A stretch of 64,000 nucleotides of DNA from Phaeosaccion multiseriatum (GCA_965112735.1 OZ218959.1:2790001-2854000), one strand, 5' to 3'; positions 43,573 to 59,600 are shown, counted from the first letter of the stretch. Notes: generated by a model not told the origin, from the letters alone. Made by a program: numbers and translations.

Positions 43573-45747
43573 GCACAGCTTGTGGGGTCGATGGAGTTCG
43601 ACAAAGACGACAGTGTGGCCATGCGCTTTGTGGCCGCCTTCACCAATCTGCGCAGCGCCATCTTCCACATCCCACTGCAGGTGAGGAGGGAGGGAAGGAA
43701 GGAAGGAGAGAGGGAGGGAGGGAGGGAGGGAGGGAGGAAGGGAGGGAGTCAGCGAGGGAATCTTACGAAGTGCGTGGTTGGGGTCTCCTGGCTAAATCAC
43801 GGTCCTCCTCCTCCTCCTCCTCCTCCTCCTGTTTTGTGGCGGTGCACACGCTTTACACACACACACACACATCACCGCATCATCCCAACAAACTCAACAC
43901 AATGAATGCAATAGTCCTTCTATGAGGCCAAGGGCATCGCAGGCAACATCATCCCCGCCATCGCCACCACCAACGCCATCATCGCGGGTATGCAGGTCGT
44001 GCAGGCAATCACCATCCTGGAGGCCAAGGTGAGTGAGTATGTGCAGGGGTGTCAGGACAGAGGGTGGGTGGACGGATGGGCGGGTGGGTGTTAGGAAAGA
44101 GAGCGGGGGGTGAGAAGTGTCAGGACAGGGTGGGTGGGTGGGCTCCTCCTCCTCCTCCCCTGTGTCCCATCCCCTGTTTGGTTATGCACCCTTGTTGGGG
44201 CCCCAAATCCGTCTCATCATCCGCATCATCCCTCCCGTCTCTCCATCTGCTGCCGTCCAATCCCTCCCACACACATACACAAACACACGCGCGCACACAC
44301 ACACGCACCCGTACACACACACACGCACATGCACACACAACAGGCCCCCATCGTGGAGTGCTGCAAGTACGTCTACTGCCTTCGCGGCCCCACTCGGAAG
44401 GGCATGTTCTTGCAACCCGCCACCCTACGAACCCCCAATCCGTCTTGCTATGTGTGCAACACAACGACGCTGGAGCTCTTTGTGGACACGCACACCACCA
44501 CGCTTCAGACGCTTGTGGACAATGTGTTCAAGGCCAGGTTGGGCATCAACGAGCCCAATATCACCATCGGGACCAGTGGCATTTACGAAGAAGTAAGTAG
44601 TATAATGTCTCACTGTACGAATAAAGACCCTGGACCCTCACCCACACCCACACCCACCCTCGCCCTCACATCCCCACCCTTCCCCTCACCCTCACGCTCA
44701 CCCTCGCCGTCACCCTCCCTCCGCCTCACCATCACCCTCACCATCACCCTCACCATCACCCTCCCCCTCCCCCTCTCCCTCCCCCTCTTTCTCACCCTCA
44801 CCCTCACCCTCTCCCTCCGCCTCGCCCTCCCCCTCATCCTCACACTCATCTTCATCACCCATCCATCCATCCATCCATCCATCCATGTCTCCTTCGCCGT
44901 GCATCACATCTTACAAACGCAAACTCCTCACCAGGGGGAGGGCTGTGACGAGAGCCTCCACGGCAACCTTCCCACCCTCCTCAAGGATCTGCCTGCAGGG
45001 GGCGTCATAGATGGCACACAGCTGAATGTGGAGGACTTTAGTCAGGACCTCAACGTCACCGTGTGCGTGTTCCACAAAGTGCTAGACGAGAAGGTGTGTG
45101 TGCGTGCGTGTGTGAGAGAGCGTGTGTGGGTGGGTGGGTTTGTGCGCGTGTTCATGTGTGTACGTGTGTGTGTTATGTGTATGCGTGTGGGTGGTTGTTC
45201 TCTATACCCTGCTGCGGACTGACCGACTTTGCTTCCCCTCCTTCCTTCCTCCCTTCCTTCCTCCCTACCTTCCTTCCTTCCTTCCTTCCTTCCTTCCTTC
45301 CTCCCGTTCTTCCATCCTTCCATCCTTCATTCCTTCCTTCCTTCCTTCCTTTCTCCCTTTTTGCCTTCCTTCCTTCTTTCCTTGCACCCCTCTGTCCTTC
45401 CTTCCGCCCCTTCCCCGCACCCCTAGGAGGTACCCGAGGGCTTCGAGCTGGCAGGGAACACAGACAAGAAGCTCCAGGAGGATAAAGCAACAAGCGAAGC
45501 AAGGAGCGCGGCCCCTGCCTCTTCTTCCTCTTCTGCTAGTACTACTGCGGCTGCCACTGCTGTACCACCAACTGCTGCTGGTGCTGCTGCTGCTGAGGCC
45601 AGTGATGATGATATTGTGATGGTGACGGACTCCACCACCCGCAAGAGGAAGCGGGAGCAGCGAGAGGAGGCCCAAGGCCAGAGAGAAGCCAAGAAGGCAG
45701 CCAAGGGGGGGGATGGGGAGGAGCAAGAGGTCATCTGTATCGACTGA
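40093..45747 (+). CDS. UBA2: SUMO-activating enzyme subunit 2 (E1), multi-exon
   Basis: Spliced product has [71 protein letters not shown], catalytic [54 protein letters not shown], basic RKRKR and terminal SIM-like EVICID-stop (TGA 45745-45747). Confidence 0.95.
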
Positions 45748-46377
45748 GCCATACATAGGCGTGAGAGAGAGGGAGAGAGAGACCATCAAGGGGCACACTG
45801 AGACAGGCCAAGGGGCACAGTGAGCCGTGCAAGGAATCGCATGTATCACCAACTGCTGCCCTGCTTATTGGGGAGAGTGGGTCCCACACACACCCCGTGC
45901 TGCCATGCTGAAGGACATGTACCGCTACTCTACCCATGTCCCGACATGCGCCATGATTGCTGTTTTTAGTTTCAGTTTCCCCCCTTTTTAGCACCCTCAA
46001 CTGTGTAACACGCACAAGTCGATATTGTCTTGACCAAATAGGAAGGAGGACTGGAGCTGGAGCTGGTCTTAAAAACTAAGCCAATCCTCCCCTCCCCCCT
46101 CCTCTTGCCACACACACCGAACACCAGGCCGGCTCCCCTTGCCACATCCTCCAGGGCATGTATATAGTGTCGTGCCCTTTCCTTGGAGGCGGTGCCAGTA
46201 CCGTATCACCAACTGCTGCTGTATCATCTGCCATCTGCTTTGAGACTACTTCATGCTTGCTGTACCGTGCTGGTGCGCGCGCTGTATCACCAACTGCTGC
46301 TGTATCTGTAGCATCAGCAACCCCAAAAAAAAACTGCTAATGCTGTGGATTGTATCACCCAACTGACTTATGATACA

Positions 46378-49300
46378 CTATGCGTAGAGCTTGCGTGTGT
46401 ACGAATGCAAGTCGTGAACACCCCCTTCCTTCTGCGCGGAGGGGCTCCTCAGCTCAAAGCGGACCACCCCGTCCCCCACGCCTGCGTGCACGGCCTTGAG
46501 AGAGAGCTGCCCGAGGTCTTGCAGGCCGTGGCGGATGGATTGGACCATGTACGGTACGAAGCGGTGCAGAGAGCCTCTGTTCAGCAGCAGGAGGAGGAGG
46601 AGGAGGAGGAGGAGGAGGAGGGGGAGGAGGAAGAAGAGAGGGTGGGGGGGGAGGCAGAATCAGTGAAATAAATCCCTGCCCTCTCTTCTCTTCTCTCTCT
46701 CTTGACTCTCTCTCCTCCCTCCTCTCCCTCTCCTTCTCCTCACCTGTCTACGACGACCCCGCTGACTCCGCTGGAGCCTGCAAACATGGAGAGGTCCCCC
46801 CCATTCCTCGTCCTTGCCTCCAAAGCGGTGGTGGCTTGATAGTGCTTGACTCGCACCCCGTCTTGAAACGCGTACTCGCCAGGGGCTTCTTCAGTGCCTG
46901 CGAGCAGCGAGCCCATCATCACGGCACTGGCTCCCTGGGGGGAGGGGAGGGGAGGGGAGGGAGGGAGGGGAGGGGAGGGGTGAGAGGCGAAGGGGGGGAA
47001 GGGGAAGAGGGAGGAGGAGGGGGGGGGAGGGGGTAACGGGCGAGGAGACAGGAGGACAGGGGAGGGAGAGAAAGGGAGGGAGAGTTCATCAGGGCACACC
47101 GCCACACTTCCCCCCACACTCGCACCCTCTCGCACATCACCAACCCCCCACCCCTTACGTAGCCCCACACGTGACCCCCACGTAAGCATACGTAAGGTAA
47201 TGTAAACGTACCAGTGTGAGTGCTTTGATGGCGCACCCCGTGTTCATGATGCCCCCATCCGCCACCACAGGTACACCAAACTCTCTTGCCACGCGGGACA
47301 CGTGATAAACTGCGCTGATCTGAGCACGACCAACTGCTCGAACCTGGGGGGAGAGGGGAGGGGAGAGGAGGGGAGGGGAGGAGAGAGAGGGAGGGAGTGA
47401 GTGACTGAGGGAGTGAATAAGGGAAGGACTGTTTGAGTGAGTGAATATGAGTGAGGGAACTAGTTTGTGGGTGGGTGGGTGAGTTGAGTGAGTGAGGGCA
47501 GGATGGCAATAGGACTAGAGTTTAAGCAAGGCAGAACGGAAGGAAAGAGGGAGGGAAAGAAGGAAGGAGAAAGGACGGAAAGAAAGACGGAAGAAAGGAG
47601 GGAAGGGAGGGAGAATGCACCCTCGTCCCATCTCATTCCGCCGTACCTGTTGGACATTGGAGACGGAGCCTGCCCCCATCCCGACTCGGATGCCGTCAGC
47701 CCCTGCCTCGAGCAGCGATCGTGCCTGGCCTGCTGTCACCACGTTACCAGCCATCACATCCACGCCGGGGTGGTTCGCCTGTCCCAGGGGGGCAACAAAG
47801 ACGAATACAGCGGTGCGGGCAGGAGAAGTGGCCGTGTCAGCAGCAGCAGCAGCAGCAGCAGCTGACTCCCTGGTCCCTTCCTTCTTCACCGTCGCGCTCG
47901 CCTCCGCCTTTTACCAGTACGACCACTTTCCCCACTCCGTACCACCGACGTGCCTACCTTAATGTATCTAATGAGGTCCCCCTGTGCGGCCGTGTGTCCG
48001 TTCCGCTCGTCCATGCACAACAGATCCACCCCCGCCTCCACCAGCAGAGCGATGCGGGCCTGCTCCGACGGGTTGGCAGACACAGCGGCTCCCACCTGTG
48101 TGCCGGGGCGTGCATGTGTGTGTGTATGTATGTGTGTGTGTGTGTGGTCAGCGCTCGTTCTCATGTCAAATGGTCTGGTTGTTTTGTCTCTACTCTTCTC
48201 ATCTCAAAGGATTTCCAGTAGTCTCGCCTCTCTCTGTGTTCCACCCTCCCCTCTCCCCCTCTCCTCCCCTCTAGCCCTTCCTCTTCCTCTCTCTCGCCCC
48301 TCTCTCCTCTCTCTCCCTCTACTCGGGTCTCCCTCGTCTCACCCTAAGCTTGCCGGTGACGGGGTCCTTGGTGGAGTGCGGAAAGTCTCGTGACTTGCGG
48401 ATGTCTGTCCGTGTAGTGAGCTTGCATAGGTTTCCCTCCTTGTCTACGATGGGCAAGTAGCCTGTGAGAAGAGTAGCCAGTAGAGAGAGAGTGAGAAGAG
48501 GAGTCAGTAGAGAGAGAGTGAGAAGAGTAGTCAGTAGAGAGAGAGTGAGAAGAGGAGTCAGTAGAGAGAGTGTGTGTCGAGCAGAGGAGGGAAACAGAGA
48601 GATGATAGAGGAGAGGAGTGATAGAGGAGAGGAGAGATGAGAGAGCGGGAGGACAGGAGAGAGCGAGAGGAGAGAGGGAGGGAGAGAGAGAGAGCGGAGA
48701 CGGAGTCAGTATTCGTCGAGTTGTAACGAACGAACGGACGGACGGGGGGCTTGCACAAGACAAGCAAAGCCCAACCCACACCAACCCGGTATAGTGACAA
48801 TGCTCGTCAAAGACGGAGCCGTGCTTGCTTGCATTGTTTGCATGGAACGTAGGGTGGATGGAGCAGGGATGGGCAGGCAGGCAACCCTGACGATAACAAC
48901 ACCGCCCCATATGCCTCTACGGGTACCTCAGAGGAGGGCCAAGTTGGCTCAGAGGCATGTGACATCGATTTTCTGGTTCGATGTTGCGGATCGATATTGG
49001 CTAAGGTATAATGAACTGTCCGTCCCTCCCTCCCCATACGCCTTTACCTTCTCTCTCCCTCCCCATACCCCTCCAACTGACTCACCTTTCTTGCTCTTCA
49101 TGAGCCGCTCCTGGGCCTCCTTGACGGAGATGCCCTCCTGCCCCACCACGATCTTATCGATAGGGGTCATGGTGTCTTGCAGCGTGCAGGAGCGGTCCTC
49201 CAGCAGATCCTGGGGAGGGAGGGGGGAGAGGGGGAGAGGGGGAGAGGGAAAGGGGTTGAGCGCACCACTCACACTTCTTCCTCTCGTCTTTCTCCATGCC

Positions 49301-51038
49301 TTCATTGCTTGCTTGCCTGCCTTCCTGCCCAGCTCCCTCCAAGTCACCGTGTGGTGTTTCTCCTGCACACACACACCCATACACTGACAAATACACATAC
49401 ACATACACGCCCACGCCCACACACACATGCACACCCACACCCACCCACACGCACATACACCCACTCACGGCTCTCACCGTATCTCTCTTGGTGCATAGCC
49501 CTACAAGCTTGGAGCCGAGGCGCCCATCCGTGGTGATGGGCACGCCTGTGATGTTCTTCTCTCTGCGAAGCTGGTCCAAGTCGCTGACCAAGTGCTGAGG
49601 GGAGAGCGTTACAGGGACGTCGATGAAACCGTTCTCGAAGCCCTTTACCTTGCGAACCATCTCCGCCTGAGGTATGTAGATATGTGTGTATGTATCATGA
49701 AGGGACGAGGGAGATGGGAGGGGGGAGGAGGGAGGGAGGGAGAGGGAGGGAGAGGGAGGGAGAGGGAGGAGGGTAAAAAGAGGGGGAGAGAGAAAGGGAC
49801 AGAGGGAGGCGGGGGAGTGTGAGTGTGAGAGAAAGGACACGCGCGTCAGAGAGAGAGAAACACAGGTGAGGCACGAGAATGGGGATGGCTATGGGTGGGG
49901 CCCCTTCCTCCCTCCCTCCCTCCCTCCCTCCCTCCCTCCCTACCTACCTACCTGCTTCTCCGGGGTGGTGTTGTTGTGCAGGATGCCGATGCACCCCTGC
50001 AGGGCCATGGCGATGGCCATCTTGGCCTCTGTCACGGTGTCCATGGGGGAGGCCGCTAGGGGGTACGCCAGGGGGATGTTGCGAGTCACGCAGCTGTGAC
50101 AGGAGGCAACAGAGTCAGTCAGTCAAGTCAGCCAGTGAGTGAGGGAGAGAGTGAGTGAAATAAGTGAGTGAAGTAAGCGAGTGAGTGAGTGAGTGAGTGA
50201 GTGAGTGAGTGAGTAAGTGAGTGAGTGAGTGAGTGAGTGAGTGAGTAAGTGAGTGAGTAAGTGAGTGAGTCAGTCGGTCAGTCGGTCAGGCCGTCAGTCA
50301 GGCAGTCAGGCAGTCAGGCAGTCAGGCAGTCAGTCAGGCAGTCAGCCTGTCAGACAGTAAGTCAGTAAGTTGGAAGCAGCAGCTTTAGCAGCTATAGGGT
50401 GGCTCAATAAAGGAGGCGAGGGTCAGTCAATCAGTCAGTCAGGCTGTCAGTCAGTGAGTCAGTCAACAATGGAAGGGCCCATACTGCCTTTACTAAATGC
50501 CTTCCTGCCGCTTACGCGTCGCTTGCTCACCTGTGCAGCTCCACCTCCTCCACGCCAAAGTCGATCTGCCCGGGTAGCGCAATTATGTCATCGAAGGTGA
50601 AGCCTGTGTGTACATATATATATATATATATATGTAATAGCATCACGGGAGAGGAGAGAGTGTGAGGGTGTGGGACATTAACCCCCTTGAGGCTGATCGA
50701 AGCGCGGGCATGGGGCCGGCCGACGAGTCATCTCACAGCACACACACACACACACACACATACATACATAATACATACACACACATACGCCCACACACAG
50801 AGAGAGAGGGAACCTGAACACGAAGACGAGGCCAATGCCTAATCAAGACAAAGACACACGGCCTGCTTGTCTGGCTTTCTGCTTCACTGCCTGCCTGCTC
50901 ACTCCCTCAGTCCCGTCACTATCTGCTGCTCTCCTCCCTGCTTGACTGACCTCTTGACCCTGGAGAGGAGAAGATATGGCTTGCGCTGTATCCGTCTTGT
51001 AGGTCTGCCTCGGTTACAGTCACCCCATTGTGCTCCAT
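46378..51038 (-). CDS. IMP dehydrogenase-like protein with CBS pair; catalytic Cys and flap residues missing (putative pseudoenzyme)
   Basis: About 11 exons from ATG 51038 ([23 protein letters not shown]) to TAG 46380-46378. Motifs [115 protein letters not shown]. Catalytic loop reads [12 protein letters not shown]. Confidence 0.93.
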
Positions 51039-51763
51039 AGGAGCGCCGCCCTGGTCAGAGCAGGGGAGAGCAGACCAGCGAACCGATAACAGATAAGAGA
51101 TTGGGTAGAGGAGGGTAGAGCAGAGGAGGGAAGAGTAGAGCAGAGGAAGGCAGGGGAGAGTTGAGCAGCAGACGCAGGGGATTCGAGGTGGAGAATGCCT
51201 GCGTGATTTGGACGCTTCGAGTCAAGAACCCCGGTTATCAAGCACCACCGAAATCAGCAGCAGCGGCCCTGGATCGACCGGATCGATGAGATCGCCAGCC
51301 AAGCTCCCCCCCCCCCCCTTATAGCAAGAGCTAAGGAAGGCAGGGGTGCAACACATGAGTACCGCCGGCCGCCACTCAGCAATCTTACATCTTCACACAT
51401 AGTGCAGTGCCACACCAAAAAAAAAGGGGGAATTTGGTCGCTGCTGTCCCTCTCGGCTCTTCCCCAACACAATGGCAACGACTCCCTCCCTTCAAAGGAT
51501 GCTGTGCTAGTACTGCTGCCTGCGATCTGGGCCTTTCCCAGGTACTATCTGCTCTTCTCGCCTGGCCCTCCCTCACAGCCGCCCGACCAGGTTGGTGCGT
51601 TCCAGCCCGCGCCCCTTCCTTCGACCATCTCCCTATTTTCTTGCCCTCTTCTCACTTCCATCGTTCCCAAGCCTTTCCATGGTCGCAGTGAGCGCGCCTC
51701 CGAAGGAATACAGTCGCGCGAGACAAGCAAGCCCTGAAGCTGGTGCTGCAAAGCAGTCACTGG

Positions 51764-56652: not shown

Positions 56653-59600
56653 CACGTACTCGAAACCTCCACACCACAAGCTCAATATTCCCCCGTGTGA
56701 GAGCCGGCGGCCGGATTGACCTCCCGCTCCTCTCCTCCCCTCCCTTCCCTCCCCTGGCACCACAGGTAGCAGCCTTGCTGGAAATGCCTACGGGAGGCCT
56801 CCGCAGTCTGGACTTGCGCCACAACTCGCTCGGCCCCACCACTGCCGCCCTCCTCATCAGCAGCCTCGCCCAGCCGCGCAGACCGCAGCAGACGCTTCGA
56901 AACCTGCAGCTCGGCGACAACATGCCCATGGCCGGGGTTGCCCATCTCGGGTCGGAAATCGCGGCGGCCCTCAAGGGCGGCCGGTGCCTCCACCTCTCCT
57001 CTCTCGGCGTAACTCTCAACGACTTTGCAAGTCGCTTCGCCCCCCCCCCTGCCTCGGCCTCGGCCTCTACCGGTGGTGGAGGGGGTGTCGGGGGCCGCTC
57101 GGCTGGAGGGGGTGGGGGGGGCACACGGCGAGGAGCGGCGCCGCAAAAGAGAAGACTAAAAGGTGTGTATGGAGGGGTGTGTGTGAGTGTGTATGTCAAA
57201 AGACCCACCAAATCCAAACTCTCTGGAAAGGCTCTTCCTTCCCTCCTTTCTCCCTCCCTGTGCCTCCCTCTCCGTCCGCCCCTCCCCCCCTCCAATCTCA
57301 GCCTCTTTTGACGTGCATCCTGACCGTACCATGTCTGTATTCTGTATCACCAACTGCTGCTACTACTCAGTGGGACATCCCATGAACGCGTTGTGCTTTC
57401 TCCGAGCCTTCATCGCGAGTGAAGGCAAGGTGAAATTGGACACTCTCAGCCTCGCACACGCGAGCCTTCACACCAGGTGCGTGCGTGCGTGCGTGTGTGC
57501 GTGTCCTGGATAGCAAAAGTAGAACGCGAGGACAACAGTTGGTGCACTGCAGTGCTTTCCCTGCCGAGGCGCTGCTGACGTCAGCGTCAGTCAATCCATT
57601 GGCCAGTCATAGGGCAGGGCATGCTGTCGAAGAGAGACAGAGACAGAGACTGAGACAGAGACAGACCGAATCGACTTATGACCACCTCCTGACCCAGTGC
57701 TTTCCCTCCACGCATGCGCTGCTGCTCCTCCGTGTACAGTACTTTACTCACCTGTGAAATCAAATCACTCATTTGAAAACAAACCCCTCTTTCGCTTCTC
57801 CATGTATGTATGTATATATATACATGTGTGTCTATGTATGTTGTGTGTGTGTATGTGTACCTACGTATGTAACGGCTTGACGCGTGTGAGCAGGTCCGTG
57901 CAGCAGCTGTCCAGCGACGGGCTGCCTCGCCTCACCAGCCTCGACCTGTCCAACTGCTTCATTGGCACAGAGGGGGCCCTCCTGCTCGCCAGAGGCCTCA
58001 AGATGGGCTACGGCCGACGGAGAGGAGGCACCCCCAGGGGAGGAGGGCCCTCACCGAGAGGAGGGGGAGGAGGAGGAGGCAGCCAGACGACCTCTACGCC
58101 CCGGGGGGGGGCTTCCCCGAGAGGGTCACTGTCTTACAAGCACAGCAAGTCGCCGCTGCGAACTCTTTTACTGCCCCACAATGCCATCGCTTGTGGCGGG
58201 GCCCGGGCCTTGGCGGAGGCTCTGGCGGTGAACACGTGTCTAAAGGAGTTAGACCTTCGCAGCAATCTCATCCGAGGGGAGGGGACGCAGGCGCTGGCCG
58301 CGGGGATACGGGCCAGTGCGACGCTCACCTGGCTGGATGTGAGTGAGTTGTCGCTCTTTGTGATAGAGAGGAGGAGGAGGTGGTGGTGGTGGTGGTGGTG
58401 GTGGTGGTGGTGGTGGTGGTGGAGGAGGAGGAGGTGGAGGAGGAGCCGGGCTTGAGGTTCCCGCGATCATTCCACCTTTACCTTGCACCCGAAGAACGGA
58501 GACTGTTCCAAGAGGAGAGCTCCTGAACCCCTCCCCTTCTCCCCCCCCCACTCCCCCTCTGTCCTGCTTCTCCTTCTCTGTGCAGGTGGGCGACAACCCC
58601 CTGTCCGCCGAGGCCCTGGACCGCTTGGTGCAGGCTGTGAAGGGCCGGCTCGCTGCTGCGGCACTGCGAGGAGGAGGCCCTGCTGTGGTCCTGCAAGGTC
58701 TTGATACAGTGCCCATCTCGGTCAATGGTAGGGACATGGCCGCCGTGGAAAAGGGAGGCCACGGCAGTAGAGCGGGAGGAGGAGGAGGAGGAGGAGGAGG
58801 AGGAGGAGGAGGAGGAGGAGGAGGAGGAGGAGGAGGAGGGGAGGAGGAGGGCCTCGTGATGATGTTCCCAAAGCGCCAGCGTCCTTTGGCCCGCACAGAG
58901 GGAGAGGCAATGCTACAGGCAGCTGCCGATGAGGAGGCGGAAACAGGGGAGGGAGGAGGGGCTGGGCCTGGGTTTGTTCTAATGACCAAGGTGCGACTAC
59001 CGATGGCCGTGCCGGAAGAAGAGGAGGAAGAGGAGGAGGAAGGTGACGAAAGCGATGGAGGAGGAGAGGACGACGATGGGGCTGGGAAGGAGGATGAAGG
59101 GAGGACGGGTAGGGGCAGGGGGAACAAGAGCAGCTCAGGAGGAAAGTGTCGCTGGACAGGAGAAGGGGTAGTGTGTACTCAGTGGTGGTGTAATCGCTCG
59201 GGCGGGTCTAAGAAAATGAGAGGCAGCAGTTTGGGCGGTAAAGGAGGAGGAGGAGCAGGACGGAGCAGCGCGCCCTCTGCCCTGAGGTGGCGGCTGACTC
59301 GACATCGAGGAGGGCCTTCATCTGGCTTGGTTGCGCCTTCTTCCCCCTCGCCCTCCTCCTCCTCCTCCTCCTCCTCCTCCTCCTCCGTCTCGATTGTGCA
59401 CGAGGGTATGCTGGGCGAGCAGGCGTGGGCAGTGCAGCAAGGGCAGCAGTTGGTGATACAGCAGCAGGAGATTGCGTCGGAGTACTACCATGCGCAGTCA
59501 GTGACGACGGGGTGGAGGGAGGGGGATGAAGTGGGCATTTGGTTGGCGGCCTGCGACGCCAAGGGTACCGTTCCCCCCCTTACCATGCGCAGGAGTATGG

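Follow-up and report, generated by a model that had tools for sequence, protein, structure and literature searches.

A 64,000-nucleotide stretch of the Phaeosaccion multiseriatum genome (GCA_965112735.1 OZ218959.1:2790001-2854000; hereafter the window) carries on its minus strand, at 51038-46378, an 11-exon gene for a protein of 508 aa that resembles inosine-5'-monophosphate dehydrogenase (IMPDH) but has a Ser in place of the catalytic Cys. The gene is probably a catalytically inert IMPDH paralogue that acts without catalysis and belongs to an ancient, vertically inherited clade of Cys-less stramenopile proteins kept beside the canonical enzyme. The flow of purines into guanine nucleotides is controlled at IMPDH, a drug target that is also studied as a model of regulation by allostery and by filaments. 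A dead paralogue shared across a major eukaryotic group, which includes kelps and other brown algae, chrysophytes and the plant pathogens Phytophthora and Pythium, would be a new regulatory layer or a new purine sensor. Cys-less proteins are labelled 'inosine-5'-monophosphate dehydrogenase' in public records, and metabolic reconstructions and target lists may count two IMPDHs where only one can work.

The residue losses are spread over the whole active site. Residue numbers are those of human IMPDH, checked against a vertebrate IMPDH2-like sequence in the alignment. In phmmer comparisons with the solved human IMPDH1, a Ser (TCC, 47661-47659) aligned ungapped on C331, the nucleophilic Cys, and a Val aligned on T333, a loop residue. 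KHYQATTA (46847-46824) aligned ungapped on KKYRGMGS, and GSSGVSG (46778-46758) replaces Q441 by Ser; M414, G415 and Q441 are the purine-ring contacts of IMPDH. At positions M414, G415, Q441, T333 and E335 the protein therefore reads T, T, S, V and Q. The flap is reduced to a remnant of 17 residues (46823-46773, from 416 to the Q441 position) without the Arg-Tyr pair R429/Y430, the dyad that activates water; canonical flaps have 22-25 residues and always contain RY. At the NAD site, MDERNG (48014-47997), standing for [14 protein letters not shown], brings S275 to Glu and S276 to Arg, whereas D274, N303 and R322 persist. Because C331, the flap Arg-Tyr, E335, M414, G415, Q441, S275 and S276 are lost, the predicted protein cannot carry out the IMPDH or the GMP (guanosine monophosphate) reductase reaction as those mechanisms are understood. 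A preliminary description of the window had reported that the nucleophilic Cys and the following Thr are replaced, that KKYRGMGS, AQGVSG and DSSQG have become KHYQATTA, SSGVSG and DERNG, and that the flap dyad is missing; each of these readings held, and all motifs named there are present.

The remainder of the protein is that of an IMPDH, as had also been described for the CBS pair, [13 protein letters not shown] and the C-terminal GVHDLHSY. It aligns with IMPDHs over the full length and has their complete architecture: a (beta/alpha)8 barrel into which the CBS pair (Bateman domain) is inserted, a finger domain and the C-terminal strand. The ribose-5'-phosphate pocket is complete (S329, D364, G366, G387, S388 and Y411; 6/6) and nearly invariant in the Cys-less clade. 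Also retained are [19 protein letters not shown] and GGVHDLHSY. Most nucleotide contacts of the Bateman domain persist, namely G113, I115, G141, R161, D162, K205, K206, G207, R224, D226, K229 and K238, with the roles of Bateman-site and finger-domain residues taken from PMC4660370.

To build the gene model, the minus strand was translated over 46300-51150 and open segments were connected wherever canonical splice sites allowed. The model has a coding sequence of 1527 nt, no internal stop and 10 introns that are all GT-AG. Its first and last positions equal those of the preliminary description, whose statement that the exons are open was upheld. Its parts, with the evidence for each in brackets, are as follows.

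46378..51038, minus strand: whole gene (splice model, open frame; tblastn against the Ectocarpus orthologue)
50951..51038, minus strand: exon 1, start codon and N-terminus MEHNGV...DGYSASHIF, without targeting extension (splice model, alignment)
50531..50603, minus strand: exon 2, N-terminal strand of the barrel (splice model, tblastn)
49952..50093, minus strand: exon 3, ASPMDTVTE segment with S68, M70 and D71 kept (Pfam IMPDH match, 8e-16)
49478..49666, minus strand: exon 4, first CBS motif with R161 and D162 kept (splice model, alignment)
49086..49209, minus strand: exon 5, linker and second CBS motif, including the MTPID segment (splice model, alignment)
48343..48461, minus strand: exon 6, second CBS motif, KKG-Y-LPIVD with Lys208 replaced by Tyr; R224-T-D226 kept (splice model, alignment)
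47958..48095, minus strand: exon 7, MDERNG (48014-47997) for LDSSQG; D274 kept, S275, S276 and Q277 replaced (Pfam, alignment)
47647..47778, minus strand: exon 8, former catalytic loop [12 protein letters not shown] (47682-47647) with Ser331, TCC at 47661-47659 (phmmer, alignment)
47212..47343, minus strand: exon 9, ADGGI (D364, G365 and G366 kept) and NTGC, in which H372 is Cys as in the clade at large (alignment)
46744..46934, minus strand: exon 10, MMGSLLAG (G387 and S388 kept), finger strands, KHYQATTA, flap remnant and GSSGVSG (Pfam, phmmer, alignment)
46378..46576, minus strand: exon 11, C-terminal helices, [12 protein letters not shown] strand (E500, G501 and G502 kept) and the TAG stop codon at 46380-46378 (splice model, alignment)

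Individual exons match PF00478 (IMPDH/GMP reductase domain), and in local tblastn all 11 are closer to the Ectocarpus Cys-less orthologue than to the canonical Tribonema IMPDH. In the alignment, the MTPID segment of exon 5 is two residues longer in Cys-less sequences than in most canonical ones. Intron positions are uninformative, with only about 3 of the 10 shared with the Ectocarpus gene. A search of the 64-kb window by local tblastn with a canonical IMPDH found no further IMPDH-family gene and no spare Cys-bearing catalytic-loop exon, the alternative exon that the preliminary description had named as a possible objection.

Absence of the Cys is the property of a whole clade. We sampled relatives by a full-library phmmer search with exon 10, which brought fragments with the loop GSV[A/S]T, and then by word searches with P0041 (one of these fragments), P0269 (the closest match of full length) and the canonical stramenopile IMPDH P0034; counts and listings are drawn from the best 120 matches of each search. 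Of 252 full-length sequences collected, 180 have Cys at the C331 column and 72 do not (73 with the window protein). Position 331 is Ala in 36, Ser in 31, Gly in 5 and Asp in 1 of the Cys-less sequences, and Cys in 180/180 canonical ones. Maximum likelihood places every Cys-less row in a single clade, supported at 100 in the Shimodaira-Hasegawa-like approximate likelihood ratio test (SH-aLRT); support is 99 (56 clade rows) after removal of the trait columns 274-278, the Cys loop, residue 372 and 411-442. The window protein belongs to a subclade of 10 rows (support 100) that it shares with brown algae, xanthophytes and Chrysoparadoxa, and its terminal branch of 0.49 is similar to those of sister lineages. 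Its identity is 67.6% with Ectocarpus sp. 6 CAN0278990.1, 67.3% with Tribonema gayanum, 65.9% with T. minus KAG5192348.1, 63.6% with Vaucheria litorea and 62.5% with Chrysoparadoxa, and these nearest orthologues (Ectocarpus, Tribonema, Vaucheria, Chrysoparadoxa) likewise have Ser at 331. The window's own protein was absent among the matches listed in the database searches, and a search of the ESM Atlas gave nothing further except an oomycete cluster.

All named clade members among the matches listed are stramenopiles: brown algae, xanthophytes, Chrysoparadoxa, chrysophytes, Florenciella, Phytophthora, Pythium and Platysulcus. Among the oomycetes are Phytophthora infestans XP_002906713.1, Globisporangium ultimum K3WPY9 and Pythium insidiosum. 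Diatoms and pelagophytes were absent from the best 120 matches listed per search. The internal order of the clade approximates that of the organisms, with marine lineages and Platysulcus first, oomycetes next, then the window protein with brown algae, Chrysoparadoxa and xanthophytes, and lastly Florenciella with chrysophytes. A Cys-less protein and a canonical GSICTTQE protein occur together in five species (Tribonema minus, Chrysoparadoxa australica, Florenciella, Phytophthora rubi and Pythium insidiosum), and in Florenciella both come from one transcriptome. Orthologues with 50-68% identity range from oomycetes to brown algae within one clade, so the loss of the Cys is ancient. Judged from the tree and its membership, the clade is ancient, of single origin and vertically inherited in stramenopiles beside the canonical enzyme.

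Two observations concern variation within the clade. Tribonema minus seemingly has two Cys-less copies, KAG5192348.1 and KAG5191181.1 (P0294, P0515), in addition to a canonical IMPDH (P0483). A subgroup with Gly or Asp at 331 (P0203, P0213, P0225, P0230, P0242 and P0304) is extended at the N-terminus by about 36-47 residues, and these extensions might serve as targeting peptides.

Across the clade, the catalytic, water-activating and purine-recognition residues are gone, and their positions are variable without a new fixed set. C331, E335 and Q441 are each found in 0/73 Cys-less sequences, M414 in 10/73 and G415 in 9/73, and S275 and S276 are also lost or relaxed. The RY dyad is present in 4/73, by chance, versus 180/180 canonical sequences, and the flap ranges from 13 to 66 residues without conserved sequence versus 22-25 in canonical proteins. 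The adenosine side of the NAD site (251-253) is relaxed as well. By contrast with these positions, selection still acts on the overall architecture, on the pocket for ribose phosphate, on the nucleotide sites of the Bateman domain and on the oligomer contacts. At or near invariance are M70, D71, N303, R322, G324, G326, S329, Q334, D364, G365, G366, G387, Y411, G442 and E500-G501-G502, and conservation extends to the strands of the finger and to the C-terminal strand, which packs against the adjacent subunit. In an entropy comparison with the canonical clade, which is rough given that the two clades are unequally sampled, extra variability is limited to the NAD side (233-320), the Cys loop, the finger tip (400-416) and the flap; for the Bateman domain, 341-399 and 441-514, conservation equals that of the canonical proteins. 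The clade also has residues of its own: H372 is replaced by Cys (64/73), G463 by Ser (99%), N213 by Asp and A188 by Gly, and in canonical Bateman site 2 F139 is replaced by Ile (52/73) and K208 by Tyr (48/73). The window protein holds all six changes (C372, S463, D213, G188, Y208 and I139).

Evidence for expression and selection comes from the orthologues. Brown-alga orthologues were found in six public runs as uninterrupted 1.5-kb open reading frames (ORFs) with flanks resembling untranslated regions on contigs of about 3 kb. In the Ectocarpus genome the gene has ten introns and takes up 8.7 kb, and we therefore read the contigs as spliced transcripts. The ratio of non-synonymous to synonymous substitution rates (dN/dS, Nei-Gojobori) is 0.04 between two brown-alga orthologues; between these and the window gene it is 0.16, an upper bound because dS is saturated. 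On these results the orthologues are transcribed and under purifying selection. The AlphaFold2 model of the Ectocarpus orthologue (P0292) has a confidence score (pLDDT) of 84.7, is confident everywhere but in the former Cys loop, at the flap and in the C-terminal tail, and superposes on human IMPDH1 and Ashbya IMPDH across the full length with template modelling (TM) scores of 0.86-0.89. In the orthologue P0269, positions 1-345 of the 345 of PF00478 are matched, together with CBS.

Compared with known systems, the window protein shares domain order and fold with canonical eukaryotic IMPDH (EC 1.1.1.205; human IMPDH1/2, Ashbya gossypii) and about 50% identity with the canonical stramenopile enzyme. 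It differs from canonical IMPDH in the absence of C331, R429/Y430, E335, M414, G415, Q441, S275 and S276, in its short flap, which is variable in the clade, and in belonging to a separate clade. The public labels can be explained by scoring: the orthologues P0292 and P0312 reach 523 and 500 bits and thus exceed NCBI's IMPDH equivalog cut-off (TIGR01302, 481.5), even though Cys-less orthologues lie 100-140 bits below canonical paralogues from their own or related species on the same model (628 and 639 bits). GMP reductases, including the CBS-bearing forms (Trypanosoma brucei GMPR, mycobacterial GuaB1), are of the same superfamily, and the CBS-bearing forms share the barrel-plus-CBS layout. GMPR also employs the loop Cys, which is absent here, and the orthologues score 95-199 bits against GMPR/GuaB1 cut-offs of 344-675, which places them outside that family.

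The actinobacterial GuaB3 (TIGR01304; Rv3410c / MSMEG_1603) is an IMPDH homologue that exists beside a true IMPDH, is without the conserved catalytic Cys loop, most IMP/NAD contacts or a known activity, and is needed for growth of M. tuberculosis (PMC9790621). GuaB3 is bacterial and has no CBS domain, whereas the stramenopile clade has the CBS pair and derives from eukaryote-type IMPDHs; orthologues score 81 and 74 bits on the GuaB3 model, with its cut-off at 342. GuaB3 is the nearest functional analogue, and the two are independent losses of catalysis, because GuaB3 lacks the CBS pair and the stramenopile orthologues are far below the GuaB3 cut-off. Dead paralogues that regulate an active twin are described for the PRPS-associated proteins and the trypanosome AdoMetDC (S-adenosylmethionine decarboxylase) prozyme (PMC13252144, PMC6221367). 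As in the stramenopile case, a dead copy exists there beside the active enzyme and oligomer interfaces are conserved. However, the folds are unrelated, and co-assembly, demonstrated in those systems, is for the stramenopile proteins what we infer. The literature covered, which omits most subscription journals, held no description of a Cys-less eukaryotic IMPDH paralogue, and the clade is apparently, and provisionally, undescribed.

What the protein does instead of catalysis can be argued from what is conserved. The Cys-less protein would be a non-catalytic oligomer that responds to purine nucleotides. Our favoured model, held tentatively and partly by analogy, is that it joins the active paralogue in common assemblies, using the tetramer and octamer contacts that are conserved; it is favoured because the two co-occur in five species, because C-terminal strand and finger are near-identical, and because dead paralogues with a regulatory role have precedents. 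A mixed assembly would tune guanine-nucleotide feedback, as dead paralogues do for PRPP (phosphoribosyl pyrophosphate) synthetase or trypanosome AdoMetDC. Somewhat more speculatively, stramenopiles may have an IMPDH 'prozyme/anti-zyme' system in which a dedicated dead subunit enters mixed tetramers and octamers, and which predates the oomycete-ochrophyte split. Such a subunit would contribute a nucleotide pocket without catalysis as well as Bateman domains whose site 2 is altered (Ile139, Tyr208), and would reset the sensitivity of IMPDH to GTP, GDP and ATP. The preliminary description had suggested a pseudoenzyme alongside an active IMPDH, and this is supported by the residue losses in an otherwise constrained protein, the clade, the co-occurrence in five other species and the transcription and purifying selection of orthologues; the roles named there (regulatory subunit, purine-nucleotide sensor or filament component) are candidates.

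Nearly as likely as co-assembly, and ranked just behind it, although doubtful in its own right, is a stand-alone sensor or scaffold that forms tetramers and octamers of its own, senses adenine and guanine nucleotides with its Bateman domain and remnant pocket, and has a target different from IMPDH, such as a nucleic acid, a transcription factor or the cytoskeleton. The conserved Bateman, finger and C-terminal features suit self-assembly equally well, and the site 2 changes F139 to Ile and K208 to Tyr suggest a ligand preference unlike that of the enzyme's feedback site. IMPDH has been reported with moonlighting partners, and the fold matches include a PDB entry titled as an integrative IMDH-CodY model. 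However, our data point to no such partner, the kinesin and RING fusions seen in some public gene models (see below) look like merged gene calls, and the strict co-occurrence with a canonical IMPDH in the five species is at least equally consistent with a complex of the two. An enzyme with a new function, in which a remodelled pocket carries out a different reaction on a nucleoside monophosphate, perhaps via Cys372, is improbable. The ribose-phosphate pocket, D274, N303, R322 and Q334 are conserved, and Cys372 (64/73) and Ser463 (99%) are fixed, as a new active site would have it, but the replaced pocket positions vary (A/S/G/D at 331, N/T/M/S/K at 414, S/T/F/G/Y at 415 and S/H/A/F/T at 441). 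Together with a flap of 13-66 residues, this is the pattern of relaxed constraint and not of a new active site, and the relaxed adenosine side of the NAD site (251-253) speaks against a new enzyme too.

Two further explanations would take the gene out of the argument altogether. That it is a young, decaying duplicate (an unprocessed pseudogene) still open by chance would fit the DNA-like nature of the matching runs and a few lineage-specific pocket changes. We consider it very improbable, given an open frame over 11 exons with 10 canonical introns, a dN/dS of at most 0.16 against brown algae and 0.04 among them, and a phylogeny that contradicts it, with an ancient Cys loss and a terminal branch like those of sister lineages. 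Least credible of all is that the Ser is an artefact, either of a single-base assembly error or of an overlooked Cys-bearing exon. TCC and TGC are one base apart, but at least a dozen coordinated replacements are spread over four exons, Ser is also found in the nearest orthologues from independent genomes and transcriptomes, and local tblastn with canonical IMPDH revealed no extra exon in the window. The preliminary description had likewise set the coordinated changes against sequencing error.

The conclusion that the gene is an inert paralogue with a non-catalytic role has to be set against several points. D274, N303, R322, T332 and Q334 are conserved clade-wide and the new Cys372 is nearly fixed (64/73), so some residual or altered ligand chemistry may persist. 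The window protein has pocket changes of its own, T332N (unique), T333V (2/73) and F401A (1/73), which could point to extra relaxation in the Phaeosaccion lineage. Four runs, all from one study, hold about 0.9 of the sampled words of the stretch; they look like DNA because intron words are present too, and RNA support rests on the orthologues. The entropy comparison is a rough one between clades of unequal sampling. For every clade member the non-catalytic role and the heteromer model are read from sequence, and a canonical IMPDH beside the Cys-less protein is known from five other species, the evidence from Phaeosaccion being the 64-kb window.

Some public gene models join the Cys-less gene to other proteins. 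A kinesin motor stands upstream of the IMPDH-like gene in Phytophthora nicotianae (P0504, 967 aa; P0501), and a zinc-ribbon plus RING protein stands downstream of it in Globisporangium splendens (P0512, 938 aa). We rejected these fusions as a clue to function, given that the partners differ between genera and are probably merged neighbouring gene calls. A flagellar link was dropped as well, since an oomycete flagellar-proteome paper contained no mention of IMPDH.

Elsewhere in the window, no functional link was seen from the neighbouring genes. An ORF at 44110-45222 (plus strand) has a ubiquitin/SUMO-activating enzyme ubiquitin-like (UbL) domain (PF14732, 1.7e-14), consistent with a UBA2 gene of which it would be the C-terminal part, and is convergent on the 3' end of the IMPDH-like gene. 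A second ORF at 57697-58455 (plus strand) has leucine-rich repeats (LRR_6, 1e-9), and the remaining long ORFs between 52 and 63 kb had no Pfam match. The introns of the IMPDH-like gene (46580-51000) are rich in CT-rich and GT/CA-type low-complexity runs, which yield long spurious ORFs in all frames, e.g. LPSFLPSF and CVCVCV stretches.

The comparison also brought up two unusual IMPDHs outside the Cys-less clade. The proteins of the predatory bacterium Vampirovibrio (P0440, P0446) are about 64% identical to stramenopile canonical IMPDH and take a tree position among eukaryote-type sequences, which may reflect a transfer between a eukaryote and a bacterium. An IMPDH intein is reported in Cafeteria roenbergensis virus, and a lysine- and asparagine-rich IMPDH of 783 aa (P0054) has an insertion of about 300 residues immediately ahead of its catalytic SICTTQE loop that looks like an intein.

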